A stretch of DNA of 64,000 bases from Pelomyxa schiedti. Its lineage: Eukaryota > Protista > Evosea. Positions within the stretch are counted from its first letter, which is position 1. Each line of letters starts with the position of its first letter. Shown piece by piece: positions 1-38,500 of the stretch. A program made the translations under genes and the position numbers. The notes under the pieces were generated by a model. The model saw nothing but the letters and a program-made list of their open reading frames with translations. It was not told where the DNA came from and ran no database searches. Where the stretch lies: contig JAHLWZ010000476.1 in the NCBI GenBank assembly GCA_020536535.1, positions 1 to 64,000 of the forward strand. The letters are read 5' to 3'.

Positions 1-741
1 GCCAAGGATGTCTTCCCGATTCTGGAAGAGCACACAGATCAGATTACCCTTATTAACAACAGCAAGAACTCTGTGAACTATTGTTTTTACGTTCCTGATC
101 TTCCAGATACCTTCACACTGGTCATGAGACCTGGAAAAGGAACTATAGGTGCACACCACAATAAAACTGTGGAGATCAAATTTATGTTGCTGTACACCAC
201 AACACTGGAGACGTTTGTGAAGCTAGTGATATCATCTTTATCCGGCGATACAATGGCGACAATATATCTCCCACTTAAACTGGTCGGCGCCCTGTCTCCA
301 AGACTTGATCCAAACGATATTGAGCTGGAGCACACTCCACTCGCCTCTGGAGCATTTGGGTACCGAAAACTTACCTCTTTCTTTTAAATGGAATTTTTTG
401 TAGGGCAGTCTTCCGAGGCACCTATCGTGGCCAAGTGGTTGCTGTTAAGGTTGTCAAACACCAGGAAGGGTTGCATGATGCCGAAAAGCAGGATTTTGTA
501 GATGAATGCAATTTAATGCATAAGTTGCACCACCAATACATCGTTGGTTTCATTGGGGCTTCTTATGTTCCTGGTATGAATAAAGTTCACCACTCAGTAT
601 TTTTCTTTAACGTTTAATTTTAGGAAAGATGTGTGTGTGCTCCGAATTAATGACACATGGCAGCTTGTCTCACTATCTGGAATCTGATGTTGATATCCCT
701 TACCTTCTGCTGTTAAAATTCTCTATGAATATTGCTGAAGC
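1..741 (+). CDS. Partial second copy of the EGF/CUB transmembrane TKL kinase gene (juxtamembrane Ig-like region and kinase N-lobe), cut by the window edge and the gap
   Basis: Near-identical to 37327..38067, introns included; encodes ASGAFG/AVFRG/VAVK kinase motifs. Confidence 0.85.
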
Positions 742-841
742 NNNNNNNNNNNNNNNNNNNNNNNNNNNNNNNNNNNNNNNNNNNNNNNNNNNNNNNNNNN
801 NNNNNNNNNNNNNNNNNNNNNNNNNNNNNNNNNNNNNNNNN
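742..841. other. Assembly gap (100 N)
   Basis: Run of exactly 100 N, a typical unknown-size scaffold gap. Confidence 0.99.
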
Positions 842-1278
842 ATAAAAATAACGGAAACCTCTCAATTGCAGACATTGCTCGCCCAAAGATATTAATGCAA
901 TGCTGTGTGTCCTGCTTGAGTGTCACCTCCCTCCTTGACATTTGTTGCTGCCGGTGGGCTCCTCCACTATGAGTACCATTATTGTATTGAGCCCCATAAG
1001 TAGTGCTGTACGTCGTGTTGAAACCCGTATTGAAGCCAGTACAACAGTTTCTGTTCATTTGTTTGCTGTTTCAAGTACTGGATATGTCCAAAAAAAGGTG
1101 TTGAAAAAGACCACCGGCACCAACTTCCCAAACTTACATCGTCCAACTTAGAAAACACAACTAGGATCCTTCCAACTTAGTCAGAAGAGAAAGGGAACCA
1201 AATCACGAAAACAGAAACCCATCAAAAACCAACTCAACACGGCAAAAACTTGCCAAGCCTACAATCAACCACAGCAGA

Positions 1279-1608
1279 ATGAGTACCTCCTACTGGAAGC
1301 CATTCGTTGCAAGGTGCCCAGCATGTCCAGGCAGGCAGGCTTTCACTTGGATTCATGCGAACTGCAATGGGACAATGTCAATCGGCAGAAACGCGCACCT
1401 TATGTGCTCCTCTGGTCACTCGCACCACATGAAAGATTGGCTTTTCAAGTGTGAGAACCATGACTACCTACCAGGCTCCCTCCAAGGCTTCCTGGATGCC
1501 ATCAGCATGGTGGGCCAAGCTGCTGGGGCTAGCTCAACCTCTTTGAGTTATGAATCACTTGCCATCAAACAGTGGGTTACAGACTGTGTTGTTGCACTCA
1601 ACAGCTAG
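1279..1608 (+). CDS. Small Cys/His-rich, probably Zn-binding protein of unknown function (109 aa, intronless)
   Basis: ATG after an A/C-rich leader; CPAC..WxHxxC..HxxC..H..WxFxCxxH pattern followed by a helical C-terminus; AT-rich 3' flank. Confidence 0.75.
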   Translation: MSTSYWKPFVARCPACPGRQAFTWIHANCNGTMSIGRNAHLMCSSGHSHHMKDWLFKCENHDYLPGSLQGFLDAISMVGQAAGASSTSLSYESLAIKQWVTDCVVALNS

Positions 1609-1890
1609 ATGATTAAAAAATATTTTCTTGTGCAAATTTATCCGGGAATGCTTTCTGGAGGCTGTGAACATGATTCTTGAAAGAAACAGGGTATCCACTC
1701 AGGTGATGGCGGACTTGTGCAAGAAGGAACGAGGGACAAAACAACAAAAAAAATGGATTCAAAAAAAACACCAAATTTCTCCAGATGTCCGGCACAATTC
1801 GGGACAGAGTGAATAAAAAAAAGGTTTCTTTGTGTTACAGGTTTCCTGGATAAGACCCAGGACTACAATTAACAGGCAACATTGCTTGAG

Positions 1891-4243
1891 CTATAAAGCT
1901 TCCTCTACATGCTGGCGCGTTTTGAATGTGTGACGTATGATGGGTCTCACATCCTCCACGGAAGATAACCGAGTCAGTAAGGGGATTAACTTCAGAAGCT
2001 CTTCATCTTCATTGGAGCCTTCAAAACTCTCAATGGGAATGCCGTTGTCAACCTGCGAGGGTGGTCAACTTAACCATTTTTTGAGTTTGGCAACAAACCT
2101 GATAACCAAAAACATGTGTGTTGTTGTCAATGATGAGAACTTGGGAAAGATCCCGACCAAGAATAGTGAGATCTTTCACATAGTTTCCCTCAACAAGGAC
2201 ACAACCTTCCCGGAATATTCTGTGTCTGTAGCTTTAAGTTAATAACGGTTTTAATATTGTCCTCCCATCCCCTCCCTGGATGTATATTTCTGTGGAAAGA
2301 CACGCACGAGAAATATATTCCTCTAGGATCAATTCCATCAAGGAGGGCAGTTGCATATTCAGCCTGTGAAGCAGTGAAAACAACAAGCTCATACAGGGCT
2401 GAAACTGCAACTAAGAACTCCTCCAAGTGTGGTCGCTTATTGCCATACATGTGACCACATCCAGGCACGTCAAACGACAAGTCTGCGTGCGGAATGGGCT
2501 CCATTGTGCAGTGGGCTAGAGTTTCATCTAGATCGAGTGCAAGGGTGGTACGTTTAGTTGCGGGTGGTGGGAGAATAACTGGTCTTGGTGGGAGAGAGGA
2601 GTGTGGGGGAAGGTGCTTAATAAAGGCAAATGCGTCGAACCGTGGGGTGAAGGTTGCAAGAGCTAAGGCAGAAAGGGAGTTGTTATCAGGGTACGCTGAA
2701 GCAGAGCACTCAGCAGTACCATCTTCAACATGTTCTAAAGGAGCAACATAGGAACGCGCTATTGCGTCTTTTGTCACGTCATCCAAGTTTGGGGTAATAG
2801 GGGAAAATCCACTATCATCTCCAACAGGACAACCTCCTTCGCAAACACATTCACTAGTGCCATTATCGTCCAGGTAAAAGACACAAGAATCAGTATCAGC
2901 TTCACAATCCACCTCTGTGACTGGTTTTCCAGTAAAATCATCCACAGGGGCATCATAAGTATGGGAGTATTTGCTTTCAGAAGGCTCGATTTCAGTACCC
3001 ACAATGGGGATATTAACTGGTGTACACTCACTGCCAGAAATAACGGTGCAACTGTCACAGCCCAGAGGTGTGGCAGGTGCCTCTATCTCAGCAGGGGGAG
3101 TTACATATGCCTCACTAACTTCAGAAGCACCATCGCTTTCGCTTGAGTGCAGCATCGTTAGGTTTGAGAAACCAGTTGATTCATCATCTGTGAAATGATG
3201 TACTGCTTCCACATGGTGAGAATTGGTGTGTTTGTTTGTAGTGACGGGGTTGTACTCACTTTGAGAAAAATTGGACTTGGGCATGTGCGCCTCAAGGTCA
3301 ACCCCAGTACCTACAATATCCACACCATTTACTCTCGTAGACGTCGTGCCTTCTAATACAATTGTACTCTCAACTTCAGGTGAAGCCCCACAAATACTGG
3401 GTTGAGATTCAGGTGTTCCCTGAACGGTGCTTTCAGGATCTTCCAGGTCACAGGGGGTATTGAGGTCGAAGCTACTGGGATCTGAACTGTCAGCCAAGCT
3501 ATCTGGATCAAGGATCAAAGAGCCAGGCTCACATTGTTCAGAGTCGTTTGTAGAAGTAACCTCAATTTCATTGGGAAGCTCTTCTGGGGTAAAAAAAACT
3601 TAATTTTCGGCCAGTTTAAGTCTCGCAAACCTGTAAGTAACTGAGGAGTTCCAGGGGTACTATCTCTATCCACTTCAGAAGTAAAGGCTAAGTGTCGGGT
3701 ACGCTTTCTACGCGGCTCCAGCGGCCCCTTTTCCGTAACCGGTGTGGATCTATTCCCGAGCTTCTGTCTCCACTCCCACACTTCCTCTACTTGAACCACA
3801 ACCTCCTCCACAACTACAAGGTCCAATTCCTCCACTCCGCTGCAGCATCCCTCGTAAGCCAACAGGTCTTCGCCGATACAACACAGGTCAATGTCGGGCG
3901 CGATGTCGTCTTGAGGTTCGGGGTTCCGCTTTCTGGGCAGAAAGTGAGCGCCGTTGTGTCCTGTTCGTGCTCCGCTGCCGGGATTCTTCGGGCGTTTGTG
4001 TGAGTGCCGTCGCCTGTGGTGCGGCTTGCCGGAATTGCGCGACTGAGATCTGAGGTGTTTCGTTGTCGTGGGTGGTGGTGGCGGTGTGAAAAAGAGTGTG
4101 GAGGAGTTGTGTCCGCTGACGTGGTTGGTTGTGAATACGAGTTTGTTCATGCGTGAATTGGAAGATGATGGTGTGGGGGATTCGGTTTCCGTGTCGTTGT
4201 CGCTGTCGTCATTTCGGTGTCGGATCTCGGCGGTGGAGAGCAT
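1891..4243 (-). CDS. CTD small phosphatase-like protein (FCP1/SCP, NIF domain, CTDSPL2-like) with a long disordered N-terminus; multi-exon
   Basis: [14 protein letters not shown] motif [45 protein letters not shown]. Confidence 0.9.
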
Positions 4244-4527
4244 TAAACAAACAATATTTATTTGTTTGTTATGCCTTTCCTTTGTATTTTTTCGCACAGG
4301 TTCTATTTTGTTATTCTTTTCGCAAACGCGAACGGCAGAGGAATTGGGTGCACGTTTCTTGTATGAAATTGTGTTGTACTGAGAAATACAATCAACTTCC
4401 AGAAGCATTGAATGAATTTCATTGACAATACGCGGAGGTGTTGATTCTGAAGGAGGGAAAAAGACTAGAACACGAAGCAAATATTTGTAATGGCATTAAA
4501 GTAAATACAATGACTAGTCTGCGCTGT

Positions 4528-6093
4528 TCAACTCTTGAAGCCGAAAATATACAAGGCCGAGCCATGTTTTACCTGGGTAATTGTGTAAGAGTGTTTGGAG
4601 TGTTGTTGGACTGTTACCTTGTCACCTGCATAGGCCAAGAGTAATTGCTTTGGACTCCATGCAAGTGAATTGATGGGAGCAACTTCAGTGGGTATTTTGT
4701 GCACAGTGAAACCACTCTCGACATGTGACTAAGTGGTGTAAGAAGTCATAAGGTAACACTTATGGGGTATACTATATCTATGTATTCGTCCTCTGATCCA
4801 GAAGCTATGAATTGGCCATCGTGACTAAATCCTAGCGTTCTCACTGGACAAGTGAGGCCAGGGAAAGTACGCACACAAGCCCACTCCGAGAGTTCCCACA
4901 GACTGACAAGTGCATCTGCACTGCCCACAGCAAAATATCTGTTGCAGCCCAAGTGATCAGGGGAAAGTAAATCGCGTCAAGAATGTGTACTTTTCCTGGG
5001 GATCGAAGCGGATAGCGTAATTCACACCAGTGTGTGCTGGAATAGTTCGGTGATGGACAAATTCCGGAAATCTGACAATTTCGATTGTGTTGAGGGAGGT
5101 TGTGAGGAAAAATAGATCGCCGCGAGGGTGCCATGCCATTTCATTCACCTTTTCGACGGTTTGTTTAATTAACAAGCAAGACTTACGGTACCTGAAAGTT
5201 GAATTCGAAAGTTTTCATTGGTTTCCAAGTCTTCACATCCAAAATTGTGATAACGTCATTCTACAATGTTGGTTGATGGGGGTTTTGAGAGTCTTCATTA
5301 ATATAGGCATTTATTGGAGTATAAAAGTGTACTGTACACTTCAATCATTGGACCTTATTTCCAACAGCAATGAATTTTCCATCAGGACTCCAGGTAATAT
5401 TGATGTTCTCACCAGCAGTGTCAATAGTGTTGCAACACTTGCCCGCTTGAAATTTCTTTAGAACTTAACAAAGTTATTCCCTCCCACTGATGCATACATC
5501 TAGCATCCCATATCCTAACAGTCCTGTCTTCTGAAGCTGTGGCCAATATATCTTGATTTAGTGGATCCCAGCACAACTGCTCCACAGAGGCTGTATGTCC
5601 TCGAAATTCGATATCTTTACCTTGCTGTAGAAACTCTCAGTGAACAAGAATATAGGCCGAAAAAAAATTTAAAAATATAAATAAAATAAAACAAAAACCA
5701 AACAAACAAGAAGGGGAGAAAGAAAGGGGAAGGAAAAAAAAAAAAAAAGTGTGGGAATGCAACATGATGTGGGTCAATTTGAAAGACCCTGGCCGTTGTA
5801 TCCACGCTCCCAGAGGCAAGTTTTTTGCCAGTGCAATTCCAGGCCACCGAGTGCACCTTCTGCGAATGGCTGTCGTACCCCTTGGACAACAGCACCGAGA
5901 ACGTCTTGGTGCTCTCCTCCGGCGTCATTATGGGTGTAGCAGCAACTGCCGGCGACGCAGCGCCGCCCCCGCCGGGCGACATCAGCCCCGACGCCGCCGA
6001 CGACAACGTCGTACTCGTAGTCGATGTAGTGGACACACCACCGATCACCCCCGTGGGCTTGGGACTCCCGCTGGACGCACGAATGGAGTCCAT
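4528..6093 (-). CDS. THOC3: THO complex subunit 3 (TEX1), WD40 protein; multi-exon
   Basis: HSQKVHSVAWNCTGKKLASGSVD, VNEMAWHP, RYFAVGSADALVSLW, TLGFSHDGQFIASGSED. Confidence 0.9.
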
Positions 6094-30973: not shown

Positions 30974-32955
30974 TCACGTGAACAGGTGTGGTGGCATTGG
31001 GGCCAATGTTGATGATATTGCTGGGGTAAATCCCATTTGCTCTATCAAGCTTTCAACGGTTATGCCTGGGGCAATTTCACACAGTTCCAGGCCCGTCTCA
31101 CACAGGCGGAACACACATCTCTCTGTAATATCTTAGGGAATGTTAGTAGCGTCAAAAGGGTAATGGGTGGTTTACAAAGAACAAGACGTCGCGGGTGTAG
31201 CCTGAAGGAAGTGGGACCACTGAAGCTAACTTGTTCTACTTGGTTCATAAATTTCCTCACTTTACCCTCCGTCAAAATTGCTGCAGAAATTAAGATAAGA
31301 TAGATGGCACAAGAGGGCTTTACTTAAAACATCATTTCCTGTCCCAACAGTGAGCCCAATGGCTGTGAAAGAACCCATAAACACTAGCTTTTTTGTTGAT
31401 GCTGTAATGTCAATGAACGCTCCTGTTCCAACGAGGGTCGAGCTGAACTTAGAAACATTCACATTCCCAAATCGATCTGCCTATTAAAGAGATGAGTTCT
31501 TTTAACGTTGTAGTTTAGATACCTGCGCCATTCCGAGAAAGGCGATGTCGAGGCCACCGCCGTGTATCAAATCAAATTGCTGGGCTGGATCTACAGCAGA
31601 AGAGCCATTGATACTTGCACCAAAGTCCTTCCCCATCTGTGGAATTCCGCCATACACCCCAAGAGCTGTCTGTGTGAAGGCATGGAATAGTACTTGTAGG
31701 CAGTACCATTGGTGACAATAAAATTCCTGACTTTATCCTCAAGAGCCACCAACCACAGGGACTCCGGCATTCCAACGCCAAAGGTGACCTGCAACAGTTG
31801 TTAGACAAAGATCTCAGCTAGTTGGGTCTTACAAGAGAGTTGGGGAACAATTCCTGTGCTGCCCTCCGCCCTATGATTTTTTTAACCCCCATTTGCAGAG
31901 GTACAGGTGGTTCTAGGGGTGCCACTAGTTCCCCACTAAACAATGGAGAATAAGTCGTCCCAAATGTCTGCCAGTGGTGCTCTGGGGGAGCCACAACAAC
32001 AAAGTCGACGAGATTCCCTTTATTAGTTCTGTAAGGTGCTATAAAAAGGAGGAAAGTCAAACCGGGGATCCGCACAAGAGCTCTAGGAATAGTTTTTGAA
32101 GCAGCAATCCTCTCAACTTGTACAATAACAATGCCACCATGACACTTTACTGCAATTGCAGCAGTCAGGGCTTCCCCAAGAAATATCTGACGTTGGGAAA
32201 AGTTATACGAGGAATAAACGTAGCACTGTATTACTTCGTGTTCCACACTGATGTTACCCTCCAAATCGGATGTAGTCCCTCGTAGAATAGCCACATTCAA
32301 CCGGGGACAATCGTAGGATAGGAATTCTTCACCGCGGTGTGTTACCTGAGTAAATTTGAGGGCTTACCATTTCCAGGAGGAAATACCAAATTGACCATGT
32401 CCTTTGTAGTTATAGAATTCAATTTTCCACCATTCAAGCGGGGATCCACGAACGTCCCTAAGCCAACTCTAGAGAGTGTGTACGGTAGACCAGCTGAAGC
32501 ATTCCGCAACATATGCAACATCACACCCAATGGAAGATTAAACGCGCTCACTTTGTTGGATGCAACCAGCTTCTGTATCTTAGGAATGTTCGCCCAGTGT
32601 GCCCCGATGCAACAATCGACGAGACCCTCGTGGGCCAAGTGGTTAACGCCTCGGTCTTTTCCATCACCCTTGGGGGACGAGTTGAGAGGCCGGAAACTGA
32701 AGGCGAGGGGAGTATACAGGCCCACCGAACCACATCAGAGTCAGCCTCCGCGGCAAGCCGCTCTCCAGGAAGATGCGTTCCAGGTTCAGCATAAGGTATT
32801 CAGCATGCCCAGCGCCGGCATATCCCCCTGGGAAACAACAACTGGTTAGGCCACCGGCGTGGAGATCTTGCCTCGGCCCCATAACCTATTACGACTGTGT
32901 CGCCATCTCTAATGTGCTGCAGGGCCTCCACCGCTCCCGTGACTTTTCCTTCCAT
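30974..32955 (-). CDS. YdiF/propionate CoA-transferase-like protein (family I, fused alpha-beta); multi-exon
   Basis: IRDGDT, GDGKDRGVNHLAHEGL, VGLGTFVDPRLNGG, RGTTSDLEGNI, KIIGRRAA, FGVGMPE, GGGLDIAFLGMA, GNVNVSKF, GAFIDIT, KFMNQVEQVSFSG, ITERCVF. Confidence 0.92.
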
Positions 32956-33063
32956 TTGTTTTAAATCGAAAGTGGTGACATCGTGTGTTGTCAGGCATCA
33001 CGGACCTTTCAAAGAAAAATGCCACACGAGAGTGATAAGCCGGAGGCAGTTGTGTAATTTTAT

Positions 33064-34985
33064 TCAGTGATCTGTGGAGGGGGGTGCGGATGGGGTCAGA
33101 TCTTGTGCGGAAGGTGGGAGATCTGTGGGTTGCTGTGCTTGGTTCTGTGGAATGGCAATGGTACTATCAGAGGCGGTGGCGGGAGGCAGTGTGCTGTCTG
33201 CCGATGTGGTCTTTGGGGCGGAGATATCGTCGAAGTCGATGTCGGCAATGGCTTCTTCATCCTCCGGGCTGATGGCGAAACTATTCCCCAGATCTGCAGG
33301 TTGGTGCCGCGGCGGTTGCGTGATGGGAGCCTGAGAGTTCTGCGGCGGCTGGCGCTGCTGCGCGCGAGGAGCCGACAAGTTGCCTTTGTTTTTCCAGTAC
33401 TGGAGGCTGTACTCTGTGTATTGGTTGGGGTGGTTGAATGCCAGCTCAGTCAGGTCGGCTGACGGGTGCTTGGCCTCAAAGTATTTCCTGCATGCAATCT
33501 GGAAGTGGTATCCTTCGGCATACCGAAGTATCTCAAACGCAACTGATTCAGGGAAGTCACTGCCCTTATTGGTCGTTACGTTTTGTTTCTCTTTAAGTTC
33601 TCACCTGTAACAGGGCCTCCAGGTCAGATCTTGGCACTTGGTGTGAATTAAACGGGCACCCGTGGTACTCATTTGCACTGATTTGTACCTAAAGATCAAA
33701 TGCTTGAGTCGTAATTTATCTGTGTGCTTACAGACCATCATTGAAATTACTTTTGCACAACCATAAGGTGTGTAGTCTTTCTGGGCACCCACTTTACCGT
33801 AGCTGTGACGAACGTTGTACAGATATTCCTTTGCCCACTTATCTTCAGTCATTTTGTGCAGCAATTCTGATCTCCAAAAGTTGATGCTCTGTTCCACAGT
33901 TAAACCAAGCCCTTAATACAGTGAACAAAACAAGGTAGTGCTAATCTGAAAGGAACCTTTCAGGAATAGTCCATATTGGTGGCGCCCCCAGTGCTTTAGG
34001 TGGTGCTCTTCCCGAAGGTGATGATGAAGTCGTTGCATACAGGGCGGGAATGATCGTGCACAATGTAAATCGAGGTCTGTTTTTGTTCATGTTGGATGTA
34101 TCATAAAGTATGATCTCTTTAAGGAGTACCTTCAATTTCGATCCTTCCTGCAGTTTGACGTGGAATAGCTGAATGAGAGGAGACAGCTTGCTTATTGGCC
34201 AGTGATACCAAAAGTGGAACCAGATAAGGAACCTTGGCCACTACTTGAGGATATGCCCTCTGTGCGCGAGCCAAAGCTTCAGTTAAGTGAACCCTGAACT
34301 TTCCAATGATAACAGTAGGCAGGCGGTCAGCCGTGACATAGGCATATCCATTTTTCAAGAATGCACCACGATCAGCAACGATGTCTATTGCTTCCTCAAA
34401 TGGAACAACATACACAGACGTCCTAGATGCACCCGCAGCATTTCCTGCTGTTGTTGCCTTCTCAATATCCCTGGTAGCACTAAATGCCACTGCTTGCATT
34501 GCACCAGCTATACCAGCAGACGTTTCCGCGAACTCCTCAGTGGATGGATTTCTGTATGACATTTTGTTCGCCACAAGGAACGACGAAAGGTCTTCTGCCG
34601 AGAGTCGCTCCAGTCTGTACTTGAGGAGTGTGCGCTCGTGATTGATGAACCATGCACGATTCTCTGGAGTTGCAGAGAGTGCTAAACGCAGTGCAAAGTG
34701 GGAGTGAAGGTCCCTTTTTAACGTTAACGACGTGGGAAAAAGGAAATAAACGTACTTTCGCAAGTCAGCAATTGTTATTAAGGGCATGTATCGTTGGATT
34801 GCCTGTGAGACTCGCTCCTCTGCTGTTGCTCGCCCTATCTCTCCACGACAAACATTAATGTTGTCTACAATTGCGAACAACGCGATTCTGTCCTGCGCCC
34901 ACTTGGTATAAACATCAGTTGATACCTCCTCGCACGGGGCTTGGCGATAGAACGGTGCTTTATCGGTGGACACCCGGGACGTCAT
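33064..34985 (-). CDS. PRIM2: DNA primase large subunit (Fe-S); multi-exon
   Basis: [66 protein letters not shown]. Confidence 0.93.
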
Positions 34986-35052
34986 GAAGAAATTGTTTTA
35001 AAAGAAGTTGAAATTTGGTTTATTGACAAGGGTGGGTTGGTCTGCCAGATCT

Positions 35053-35416
35053 TTACATTCTGTGAGCCACCAGCCTCTGCATTGGAGCCCTCTGCGACAA
35101 CCTTAAGATGGTCTTCACTTGTCTCCTCTGTGAGGCCTGCCTGATGGAGCTTCTAATTTGTCTCTGCTGTGTCAAGCGCAGGGTGGTGCCCCTCGCACTC
35201 TGCCACCTGTTGCGAGCTGCCCGAAGGGTGGCGCCCCTCGCACTCTGCCACCTGAATTTCATCTCCCTAAGAGGTGCGTGGATCTGTCGATTCACTAACG
35301 AGGTCATCCTGGCATCGACCTCCTGCAGGGAGTTACAAGACAATAAAAAGGCGTAAACATACCAAAGCAATGAGGCAAAGAAGGACGACAAGGAACAGAA
35401 TATATATTGGCGGCAT
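35053..35416 (-). CDS. Predicted secreted, highly cationic Arg-rich peptide (107 aa; exons 35416-35363 and 35322-35053)
   Basis: ATG, signal-like MPPIYILFLVVLLCLIAL, 40-nt GTATGT..CTGCAG intron, in-frame EVDA|RMTSL...HRM*. Confidence 0.7.
35180..35254. repeat. 30-bp direct repeat x2 (1 mismatch, 15-bp spacer) encoding RWQSARGxTL twice
   Basis: agggtgg(t/c)gcccctcgcactctgccacctg at 35180-35209 and 35225-35254. Confidence 0.9.
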
Positions 35417-35584
35417 AGCCGTCGGTATTTGCTGGTTGTTACGGTTGGTTGCGGTTGTTGATTATGCTTTGTTGGTTTATCTTCTTGTTTTTTATTTGGT
35501 TCGAATATCATCGGAATAGTATATAAGTACTCTTTGTGCAACTGCAGTCTGCACAAAACGCCCACCCAGGAAGGTGCCAAAAAA

Positions 35585-38500
35585 ATGACGAAGATGTTTC
35601 GTGCCATGTGCGCTTTGCTTGGTGTTGTCGGTCTCATCCGCTCGCAGTGCGTAGGGCCAAACATCAATGTGCAGTTGCCCGAGCCATACAACTACGAGGT
35701 CGGTACCACCCCCGACTGGGTCATAACCCCGGCCGTCAAGTGTGGCGTGGTGCAAGACGGTTTCACGTGGGGGTCAGATCCTACAGTCGCGGTTGCCGAC
35801 GCCGAAACTGCCGATTTGACGTTCACGTGGTGCTGGGGCGACTGCGCCGGTGGCCCCACCCAGGCCAACTACGTGTTGTCACACTACCTGGCATCCACCG
35901 ACAAGGCCACCAATTCCACTTTCCACAGCGAGCTCTCATGCGACCTCCCATCATCGGGTTCCGTGCCCTCCTCCGCCACCTCCTTTGACGTGAGCGTCGT
36001 CTGCGGTGCGGATTTTCTGGGCACCATAGTTATGTCATTCCTGTTTGTTGACGCTTCAACGGGCGCAACCACACTTGTTGAGTTTGTGGTTCGCTATCAG
36101 TGTTACACTCCTGGGTGCTCTACACTATGCTATGAGCACGGGAACTGCGACGTCCTGCGTGGGCTTTGTAAATGTAACACAGGCTGGCTGACTGATGACT
36201 GTGCATTATACGTCACCTACCCGAAGGAGCTATGCTCCCTGCAACACTTCAACGTATCCTATATAATACCGTATGTCTTCACCCTACCCACCTTTTGGTT
36301 GCACTTCTTACCAAGAGGCACAGAGCTGATTTCAATGGCGTCAATGGCTTGGGTTTTCAAATATATTTCACCCTGATTCGCTCGTTCATAACTGCGGAGA
36401 GAAGAAACTTTGCCACTTGGACCACAGCAGTACCAGTGAGCACTGACCCAATCCGAGACCAAGATTTCCTGAATGATACAAAGCTATTTACATGCTTTTT
36501 AGTTCCTGGACATTATGACGTTCAAATATCGAGCAACTTGATTACAATTTACAAAGATAAACTTCTTGTACATGACTATGAGACCTGTGGAATGGCAGAC
36601 AACTGCAGTGCTGATGCTACCTGCAATGGACATGGCACTTGCAATATCAACAGTTCCTGTGAGTGCAATGAAGGTTATTTTGGATCAAACTGCACGCGCG
36701 GATGTTCCTCAAACGCAACACATACAACCCCCGAGGGTACAATTCAAAGTGACTATCCATGGAATGGACAAGATTCGTCAATGGAATATAAATATTCCAC
36801 CACTTGCCAGTGGAACGTTGATGTCGGCGGATCTTACGATGCTATTGAGTTTACAATACAATACTTATCGCTGGGAGATGATACTGTAAGTATTTACGAA
36901 GCTGACGGGATAGCATCACCTCAGAAGCTTATTTCCACCTTTTCTGGGTCCACGTTCTCCAGTGATACAATTACTGTTGACGGGAGATACTCTGTAGTGA
37001 CATTCACCTCAACATACACAAATGCTGAATCGGGCTTTGTTCTGAATTATAAAGCAATTAATAACCCCATTCCGGCAGTGGGAATAGCCTTCATTGCTGT
37101 TGCTGCAGCAATCGTTCTAGGTGCAGCAGCTGCTGCTTTGGGTGTACTGACAACTTTCTTGGTTCGTCGACGTCGAAGGCTTCTTGCAGAAGCCGAGGCA
37201 ACTCCAGCTGAAGCCATGCCAGCATCCGAAGTTGAGAACATTAACTACTCAGAAAGTGAAACTACCACACAGATGGATGAAGCTTCGTTCAGTATGGACA
37301 AAACAAAGATCGACTTCGGTTTGACTGCCAAGGATGTCTTCCCGATTCTGGAAGAGCACACAGATCAGATTACCCTTATTAACAACAGCAAGAACTCTGT
37401 GAACTATTGTTTTTACGTTCCTGATCTTCCAGATACCTTCACACTGGCCATGAGACCTGGAAAAGGAACCATAGGTGCACACCACAATAAAACTGTGGAG
37501 ATCAAATTTATGTTGCTGTACACCACAACACTGGAGACGTTGGTGAAGCTAGTGATATCATCTTTATCCGGCGATACAATGGCAACAATATATCTGCCAC
37601 TTAAACTGGTAGGCGCCCTGTCTCCAAGACTTGATCCAAACGATATTGAGCTGGAGCACACTCCACTCGCCTCTGGAGCATTTGGGTACCGAAAACTTAC
37701 CTCTTTCTTTTAAATGGAATTTTTGGTAGGGCAGTTTTCCGAGGCACCTATCGTGGCCAAGTGGTTGCTGTTAAGGTTGTCAAACACCAGGAAGGGTTGC
37801 ATGATGCCGAAAAGCAGGATTTTATAGACGAATGCAATTTAATGCATAAGTTGCACCACCAATACATCGTTGGTTTCATTGGGGCTTCTTATGTTCCTGG
37901 TATGAATAAAGTGCACCACTCAGTATTTTTATTTAACGTTTAATTGTAGGAAAGATGTGTGTGTGCTCCGAATTAATGACACATGGCAGCTTGTCTCACT
38001 ATCTGGAATCTGATGTTGATATCCCTTACCTTCTGCTGTTAAAATTCTCTATGAATATTGCTGAAGCCATGGCCTACCTGCACAGTAACAAAATTCTATA
38101 CAGTTATTCTCCTCTGTTCCATTTTTGTTGAATCTTACTAGTGATAGGGGACTTGAAATGCCAAAATGTTCTGCTCGTTTCAACTGTTATTTCTGCAAAC
38201 ATTAACTGCAAGCTCACTGGTTCGCCTCTATCCCTCTTTTTCTTTTTTTTTTTTAAAAAAAGAGAACAGATTTTGGAACTGCACGAAATGTTGAAAACCC
38301 AGGTAATTTACCATTTTCGACCATTGAAAGCATCCCTGCTTAATTGTGCAGATAAACTTTTCCGCTACACAAATGGTGTTGGTACCCCAATCTACATGGC
38401 CCCGGAACTTCTCAAGGCAGAGATGTACAACGCCAAGGTTGGTTCCAAACCAAAAACACAACAACAACCCACAATGACCAAGAGCCTAACCCTCCAACAA

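Follow-up and report, generated by a model that had tools for sequence, protein, structure and literature searches.

The window, i.e. the whole 64,000-nucleotide stretch of the Pelomyxa schiedti genome analyzed here (contig JAHLWZ010000476.1), contains one member of a family of at least five paralogues that have a common leader exon and are entirely different in the rest of their sequence. This member is a spliced, transcribed gene of the minus strand, whose product of 107 residues consists of a signal-peptide-like leader followed by an extremely cationic body. The original prediction had presented it as a hidden gene for a secreted Arg-rich peptide unrelated to amoebapores: the spliced gene is genuine, the anatomy of the leader holds and the product is not an amoebapore, whereas "hidden" has to be abandoned, given that an identical protein of 107 aa was already in GenBank (KAH3762172.1, Pelo_5983). 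The family of five, with its unalignable mature parts, had been missed, and is new here together with the contrast between leader and body and the transcript support.

The gene lies between a minus-strand open reading frame (34122-34985) that matches the Pfam family DNA_primase_lrg (PRIM2) and a plus-strand gene starting at 35585, with matches to EGF, WIF and CUB, a transmembrane stretch followed by R-R-R-R-R and, further along, kinase motifs that were read directly, which agrees with the proposed location between PRIM2 and a receptor kinase. No Rfam match (E <= 1) was detected on either strand of 34900-35650. The features of the gene, all on the minus strand, are the following:

35519 to 35546, minus strand: promoter-like stretch, a GCAGTTGCAC-type motif and then a TATA-like box, CTTATATA, at 35527 to 35520
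35417 to 35459, minus strand: A/C-rich 5' untranslated leader; RNA contigs extend up to 35459 (run X1) and 35437 (run X2)
35363 to 35416, minus strand: coding part of exon 1, 18 hydrophobic codons from the ATG at 35416, M-P-P and then 15 apolar residues
35323 to 35362, minus strand: GT..AG intron of 40 nt, phase 0, starting with GTATGT and ending with CAG
35053 to 35322, minus strand: coding part of exon 2, 89 codons plus TAA, opening with E-V-D-A-R; stop codon at 35055 to 35053
35177 to 35209 and 35222 to 35254, minus strand: in-frame duplication, two 33-nt copies encoding R-W-Q-S-A-R-G-[A/T]-T-L-R
34981 to 35052, minus strand: 3' untranslated region, AATAAA at 35024 to 35019; RNA contigs end at 35030 (X1) and 34981 (X2)

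The stretch upstream of the transcribed region would, judging from its motifs, act as the promoter. There is no upstream ATG in the 5' leader (35417-35459), so that the first ATG of the transcript opens the coding frame, and the AATAAA lies 29-34 nt past the stop codon. The internal duplication, already noticed in the original prediction, is a 33-nt direct repeat with 94% identity, and since its copies are spaced by 45 nt, or 15 codons, it is in frame. At 35323-35328 of the minus strand the acceptor reads CAG and then GAG, a tandem NAGNAG site; the second AG, if used, would remove the Glu before V-D-A, and only the 40-nt form of the intron is present among the RNA contigs.

Expression of the member in the window is documented by four single-cell RNA libraries, which come from one sample of one study and are counted as one line of evidence. 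Over 34000-36400, all four runs contain a contig that omits exactly the 40 nt of the intron with zero mismatches; the omitted segment has the ends CT..AC on the plus strand, that is, GT..AG on the minus strand. The exact splice that had been proposed, with its canonical 40-nt intron and its 18-codon hydrophobic exon, is thus found in minus-strand mRNA of every library. The contigs of the small gene are separate, spliced and 232-426 nt long (35030-35459, 34981-35437, 35111-35406 and 35155-35406), corresponding to a transcript of its own of about 390-430 nt, apart from the PRIM2 contigs, which speaks against a 5' UTR of PRIM2; PRIM2 is present as separate RNA contigs, with its own 53-nt intron removed. 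Because the receptor gene and the segment 34680-34980 are without cover in the same runs, the contigs derive from RNA and not from DNA carry-over. Past 35437, the X2 contig carries 9 extra letters, the reverse complement of which is GTACATGGG, a sequence that we take to be the end of the Smart-seq2 template-switch oligo. The P. schiedti RNA libraries were prepared by a modified Smart-seq2 protocol (PMC10579272), and the tail at 35437 should therefore mark a point where a minus-strand RNA begins, 21 nt upstream of the ATG. As the same contig extends to 34981, 5 nt inside the PRIM2 reading frame, there may be some transcriptional read-through into PRIM2.

Antisense to exon 2, the plus strand has an open frame of 82 codons, rich in Cys and Leu (35108-35356). 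It was rejected as a gene, since GT..AG ends of the intron exist on the minus strand only, and the 5' end indicated by the template-switch tail is that of a minus-strand RNA; none of the RNA contigs supports this frame.

The 85 residues that follow V-D-A include 19 Arg, 2 Lys, 1 Glu, no Asp and no Cys, the composition stated in the original prediction, with a net charge of +20 and a pI of about 12, and the body as a whole is Arg/Gln-rich. The leader appears from its sequence to have the anatomy of a cleavable signal peptide, as had been suggested for the V-D-A site. In all five members the hydrophobic run comprises 15-17 apolar residues and no charge, like the uninterrupted h-region of signal peptides (roughly 7-15 residues near the N-terminus), and the junction triplets (V-D-A, V-D-A, A-D-A, V-D-A and V-E-S) occupy the same aligned place just past the intron. 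By eye, all five have V or A at -3 and a small residue at -1, in keeping with the -3/-1 rule. No basic residue precedes the h-region in the leader, which is therefore devoid of a basic n-region. A single-sequence AlphaFold model predicts one long helix running from the leader into the body (pLDDT 82), to be read at best as helical propensity.

The two exons were searched separately against protein databases, and full-length work was done on the database record. A word search with exon 2 found a single protein, the 107-aa hypothetical protein Pelo_5983 of P. schiedti, with 100% identity over the exon and a sequence equal to exon 1 plus exon 2. Among 5.8 billion proteins, word searches with exon 2 of the window gene and with residues 1-40 of KAH3762172.1 found only this protein itself, and exon 2 of the paralogue on contig C1619 likewise found only its own protein, present in GenBank as Pelo_18072. 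phmmer on 1.84 billion representatives returned the window protein itself only, the ESM Atlas gave no usable match, and Pfam searches with the exon 2 products of all five members (E <= 1) yielded only sub-threshold noise. To judge from these searches, the family is known only from P. schiedti. A full-text search of the literature found no paper mentioning Pelomyxa together with antimicrobial peptides.

The single-cell assembly of P. schiedti has been described as 52.4 Mb in 5337 scaffolds (PMC8887013), and 52,367,397 bases in 5337 contigs were searched here. The 364-nt gene matched two further loci (C277 and C1619), in the leader exon (plus intron) only, with 80-86% DNA identity in exon 1, and two more, C320 and C830, were recovered with degenerate codon patterns of the leader. 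A search for paralogues sharing the signal exon, one of the checks suggested originally, has thus uncovered four further loci. With one mismatch allowed, the start-of-exon pattern had 72 matches versus 47 in the control, and on inspection C830 was the sole new member among them; a donor-side pattern led to the same four loci, and its one-mismatch matches were rejected as unrelated genes. No sixth member was found by further searches of the genome with leader and donor patterns. Because only leader-like sequences could be sought, five is a lower bound.

The two-mismatch matches of the leader pattern were rejected as family members, being leaders of cathepsin-like proteases. The loose pattern matched leaders of the type M-K-A-V/I-L-V-L-L on contigs C792, C1407, C948 and C1475, in genes where the leader is followed by a cathepsin-propeptide-like region and a papain-type active-site region. 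These genes read like ordinary secreted proteases, and their leaders like the typical signal peptide of the species, with a basic n-region.

All five loci have the same layout: an ATG-started exon of 18-19 hydrophobic codons, a phase-0 GT..AG intron at one codon boundary (40 nt in the window gene, and 41, 41, 64 and 85 nt), and a second exon that opens with E-V-D-A, A-D-A, V-D-A or V-E-S and continues for 75-95 residues to the stop. The five bodies are free of Cys, have 0-2 acidic residues, a net charge of +11 to +25 (about 0.15-0.26 per residue), a pI of 11.6-12 and a mean Eisenberg H of -0.2 to -0.45. Beyond the E/D of the junction they have no acidic region, one member ending in E-E, and no K-R or R-R site is conserved among the five, each having at most one. 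Most bodies are built of in-frame tandem units, with repeat periods of 33, 45, 48 and 60 nt, all multiples of three: the C1619 member has five 11-residue units with R-W-G, the C277 member seven M-H-S-P-K-W units set within units of 20 residues, and the C320 member 16-residue S-R-Q units. There is no tandem repeat in the C830 member and only one duplicated unit in that of the window. No part of the bodies can be aligned across the five members, and exon 2 of the window gene, searched against the genome in six frames, matched only itself.

Upstream sequences are also partly shared. In C476, C277 and C1619 a GCAGTTGCAC-like motif precedes a TATA-like box by about 10 nt, and the resulting promoter-like motif is located at 35519-35546 of the window (minus strand), at about 1690-1720 of locus L002 (minus strand) and at about 1375-1410 of locus L003; the 5' leaders are A/C-rich in all five members. 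These resemblances hint at a common regulation of the family members through a shared promoter type. A GTCAATAAA..CCAA element, resembling the hexamer region of the window gene, is found 3' of the C1619 paralogue.

The C320 member (4452-4760) has a gap of 100 N within its intron, flanked by a 121-nt duplicate of the leader plus exon 1, and the short contig C4921 (543 nt) is a duplicate of this locus, 94% identical upstream and ending in the same intron. The assembly breaks at the start of the variable part, as if strong differences between alleles set in at the intron.

Of the four paralogues, only that of C1619 has PRIM2 and a receptor gene beside it: it is within a duplicated block, and its leader and body can be compared there with their surroundings. 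Positions 1-4224 of this 4.2-kb contig correspond to 32746-36919 of the window and hold a second copy of the start of the receptor gene, the small gene and PRIM2, so that the assembly contains two PRIM2 copies. Since coding parts of the block are about 91% identical, against near-random identity in its intergenic DNA and introns, the block appears to be either an old duplicate or a haplotype of very high divergence. In 60-nt windows, the two copies (C476 versus C1619) compare as follows:

Coding parts of the flanking genes: identity mostly 44-57 of 60
Intergenic DNA and 5' leader: identity 26-35 of 60, gapped, near random
Leader exon: identity 50 of 60
Intron, exon 2 and 3' untranslated region: random level

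For the last of these, the Smith-Waterman score of 23 compares with 18.6 +/- 2.3 in shuffles, and the sole exception to the random level is a stretch of 14 nt encoding V/A-D-A-R. From these identities, the leader and the junction are held and the body drifts at the non-coding rate. The body sequence thus appears to change as fast as non-coding DNA, yet its frame, length and charge are kept: an in-phase open second exon of 78-98 codons is present at all five loci, for which composition-matched shuffles give a joint chance of about 8e-8. Among the repeat units, 10 variable codons differ only synonymously and 11 with a change of residue; although these are small numbers, synonymous change exceeds what is expected from random mutation, which is weak evidence for selection on the peptide.

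Taking these data together, we tentatively favor, as a reading somewhat short of probable, that the family encodes polycationic effector peptides of the secretory pathway acting on microbial envelopes, because of the anatomy of the leader and a layout like that of myticalins and NCR peptides. The hydrophobic leader of 18-19 residues would direct the nascent chain into the ER, and signal peptidase would cut after the conserved [V/A]-[D/E]-[A/S] triplet, releasing a helix-prone, Cys-free polycation of 75-95 residues (net +11 to +25) into the secretory or endolysosomal route. There it could bind the polyanionic envelopes of microbes and, once it has entered, perhaps also nucleic acids, like linear cationic host-defense peptides; its targets might be ingested prey, vacuolar or cytosolic prokaryotic symbionts, or competitors.

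The closest likeness is to the myticalins of mussels, which have a well-conserved signal peptide and an extremely variable, Arg-rich and Cys-free mature region with pI > 11 (PMC5577615). Both are taxonomically restricted multigene families with short repeats, in which paralogues are found through the signal peptide and not through the mature part, and the Pelomyxa family shares with the myticalin and dermaseptin type the combination of a conserved leader with a hypervariable, cationic (pI > 11) and Cys-free body. There is no sequence homology with myticalins, however, and the dibasic cleavage site and the conserved anionic C-terminal pro-piece of myticalins are both absent from the Pelomyxa family. 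The mature part of myticalins is shorter (23-42 aa versus 75-95 aa) and is encoded in one exon with the signal, whereas in Pelomyxa the two are split by an intron. In addition, myticalin activity has been assayed, whereas the Pelomyxa family is known here from sequence and transcript. NCR peptides, too, combine a conserved signal peptide with a cationic mature part that is hypervariable (PMC12176269). Like the legume NCR peptides and the secreted peptides of aphid bacteriocytes (BCRs), the Pelomyxa family belongs to a host with endosymbionts; NCRs and BCRs, though, have 4-6 conserved cysteines in 35-55 aa, against none in 75-95 aa in the mature parts of Pelomyxa, and NCRs form families of hundreds rather than five.

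Among the effector peptides of Archamoebae, the saposin-like amoebapores are, to our knowledge, the only ones that have been studied well. These and other saposin-like pore formers are amoebal proteins with a signal peptide, aimed at ingested bacteria, and have a six-cysteine saposin fold; the Pelomyxa family has no Cys and no Pfam match, as expected from the original claim that the peptide is unrelated to them. High Arg content together with Trp or Gln is a property of indolicidin, tritrpticin, PR-39 and arginine-rich RNA-binding motifs, which have 13-39 residues and are often Pro-rich, and we take this likeness as a lead only; the charge density of the Pelomyxa bodies lies within the range of such Arg-rich linear peptides, with no homology to them.

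Against an antimicrobial role, classical helical antimicrobial peptides are shorter and more hydrophobic than these mature parts, which also have no anionic pro-piece, a common element in precursors of cationic peptides. Against secretion itself stand the missing basic n-region and the strong positive charge of the body, which could stay in the cytosol by the positive-inside rule, according to which positive charge favors the cytosolic side of a membrane. The main rival, which we consider unlikely, is therefore that these are small membrane-anchored proteins, with an uncleaved N-terminal anchor and a cytosolic Arg/Gln-rich tail whose partners at an endomembrane would be RNA, ribosomes or acidic lipids. 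A body charge of +11 to +25 with no basic residue before the hydrophobic stretch would place the C-terminus in the cytosol, the continuous helix of the model is predicted to span the leader and the body, and stretches such as T-R-Q and R-R-W are reminiscent of arginine-rich RNA-binding motifs, a lead that we count for the anchor. The hydrophobic run, on the other hand, is just 15-17 residues long and is directly followed by conserved acidic and small residues (E-V-D-A, A-D-A, V-D-A or V-E-S) instead of the basic cluster of a reverse signal-anchor; the conformity of the triplet with the -3/-1 rule in five of five members also speaks for cleavage, and a wholly changeable body sequence is a poor fit with a specific cytosolic partner.

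Cationic peptides of this kind might also be directed specifically at symbionts, although we regard this as improbable. P. schiedti is an anaerobic archamoeba whose three prokaryotic endosymbionts, two bacteria and one methanogen, reside partly in vacuoles, and it is kept in polyxenic culture (PMC10579272). The leader would then be an address to the symbiont vacuoles or contact sites (Ca. Vesiculincola, Ca. Syntrophus or Ca. Methanoregula), and the fast-changing polycationic bodies would control the growth or permeability of the partners. If so, the family would be a cysteine-free amoebozoan counterpart of the NCR peptides of legumes, and might be the first case of host peptides directed at an endosymbiont that is an archaeon.

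It seems similarly improbable that the family is simply fast-evolving and lineage-restricted, without any sequence-specific function, its bodies being drifting low-complexity repeats or a poorly translated frame. Divergence of exon 2 at the non-coding rate between the syntenic copies, the lack of relatives in the protein databases searched and the resemblance of the repeats to products of replication slippage would all agree with such drift, but the leader exon is clearly constrained, synonymous changes are in excess among the repeat units, and the frame, the length (78-98 codons), the extreme positive charge, the absence of Cys and the scarcity of acidic residues have been kept at five loci despite saturated divergence.

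Less credible still is that the products are multi-peptide precursors, in which tandem units of 6, 11 or 16-20 residues are cut into many short signaling or defense peptides. The five 11-residue units of C1619, the seven M-H-S-P-K-W of C277 and the 16-residue units of C320 would suit such processing, but there are no regular dibasic or other processing sites beside the units, with a maximum of one R-R or K-R per protein, and the window member has a single duplicated unit and C830 none. A chance open frame in a divergent promoter or in the 5' leader of PRIM2 can be practically dismissed. In its favor, a distance of 68 nt separates the gene from the PRIM2 start downstream of it on that strand, an RNA contig extends as far as 34981, and read-through across the uncovered 34680-34980 is conceivable; against it, the small gene has spliced RNA contigs of its own and an AATAAA past its stop codon, only one of the four paralogues has PRIM2 and receptor genes beside it, and the frame is kept in five of five.

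The secretory effector reading is of interest because this expressed, species-restricted family bears the genetic signature of an arms race or of partner control, with a constant leader and a body that is free save for charge and length, in a host whose biology is dominated by three intracellular prokaryotes and by bacterial prey. If secreted and active, the peptides would make it possible to study at the molecular level how bacteria and archaea are killed, tolerated or managed by an anaerobic amoeba, and would add a cysteine-free, repeat-built class to the cationic peptides of eukaryotes; if they are membrane-anchored cytosolic polycations, they would still be an orphan family in need of an explanation. 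In both cases, five "hypothetical proteins" are now to be regarded as members of a single family.

The PRIM2 RNA contigs gave one further observation. Over 34130-34679 of the window, those of X1 and X2 differ from the genomic sequence at 20 of 550 and 8 of 170 positions, respectively, with differences mostly spaced in threes, at third codon positions, and those of run X4 match it exactly. A second allele or strain, about 3-5% divergent, is expressed in the same culture.
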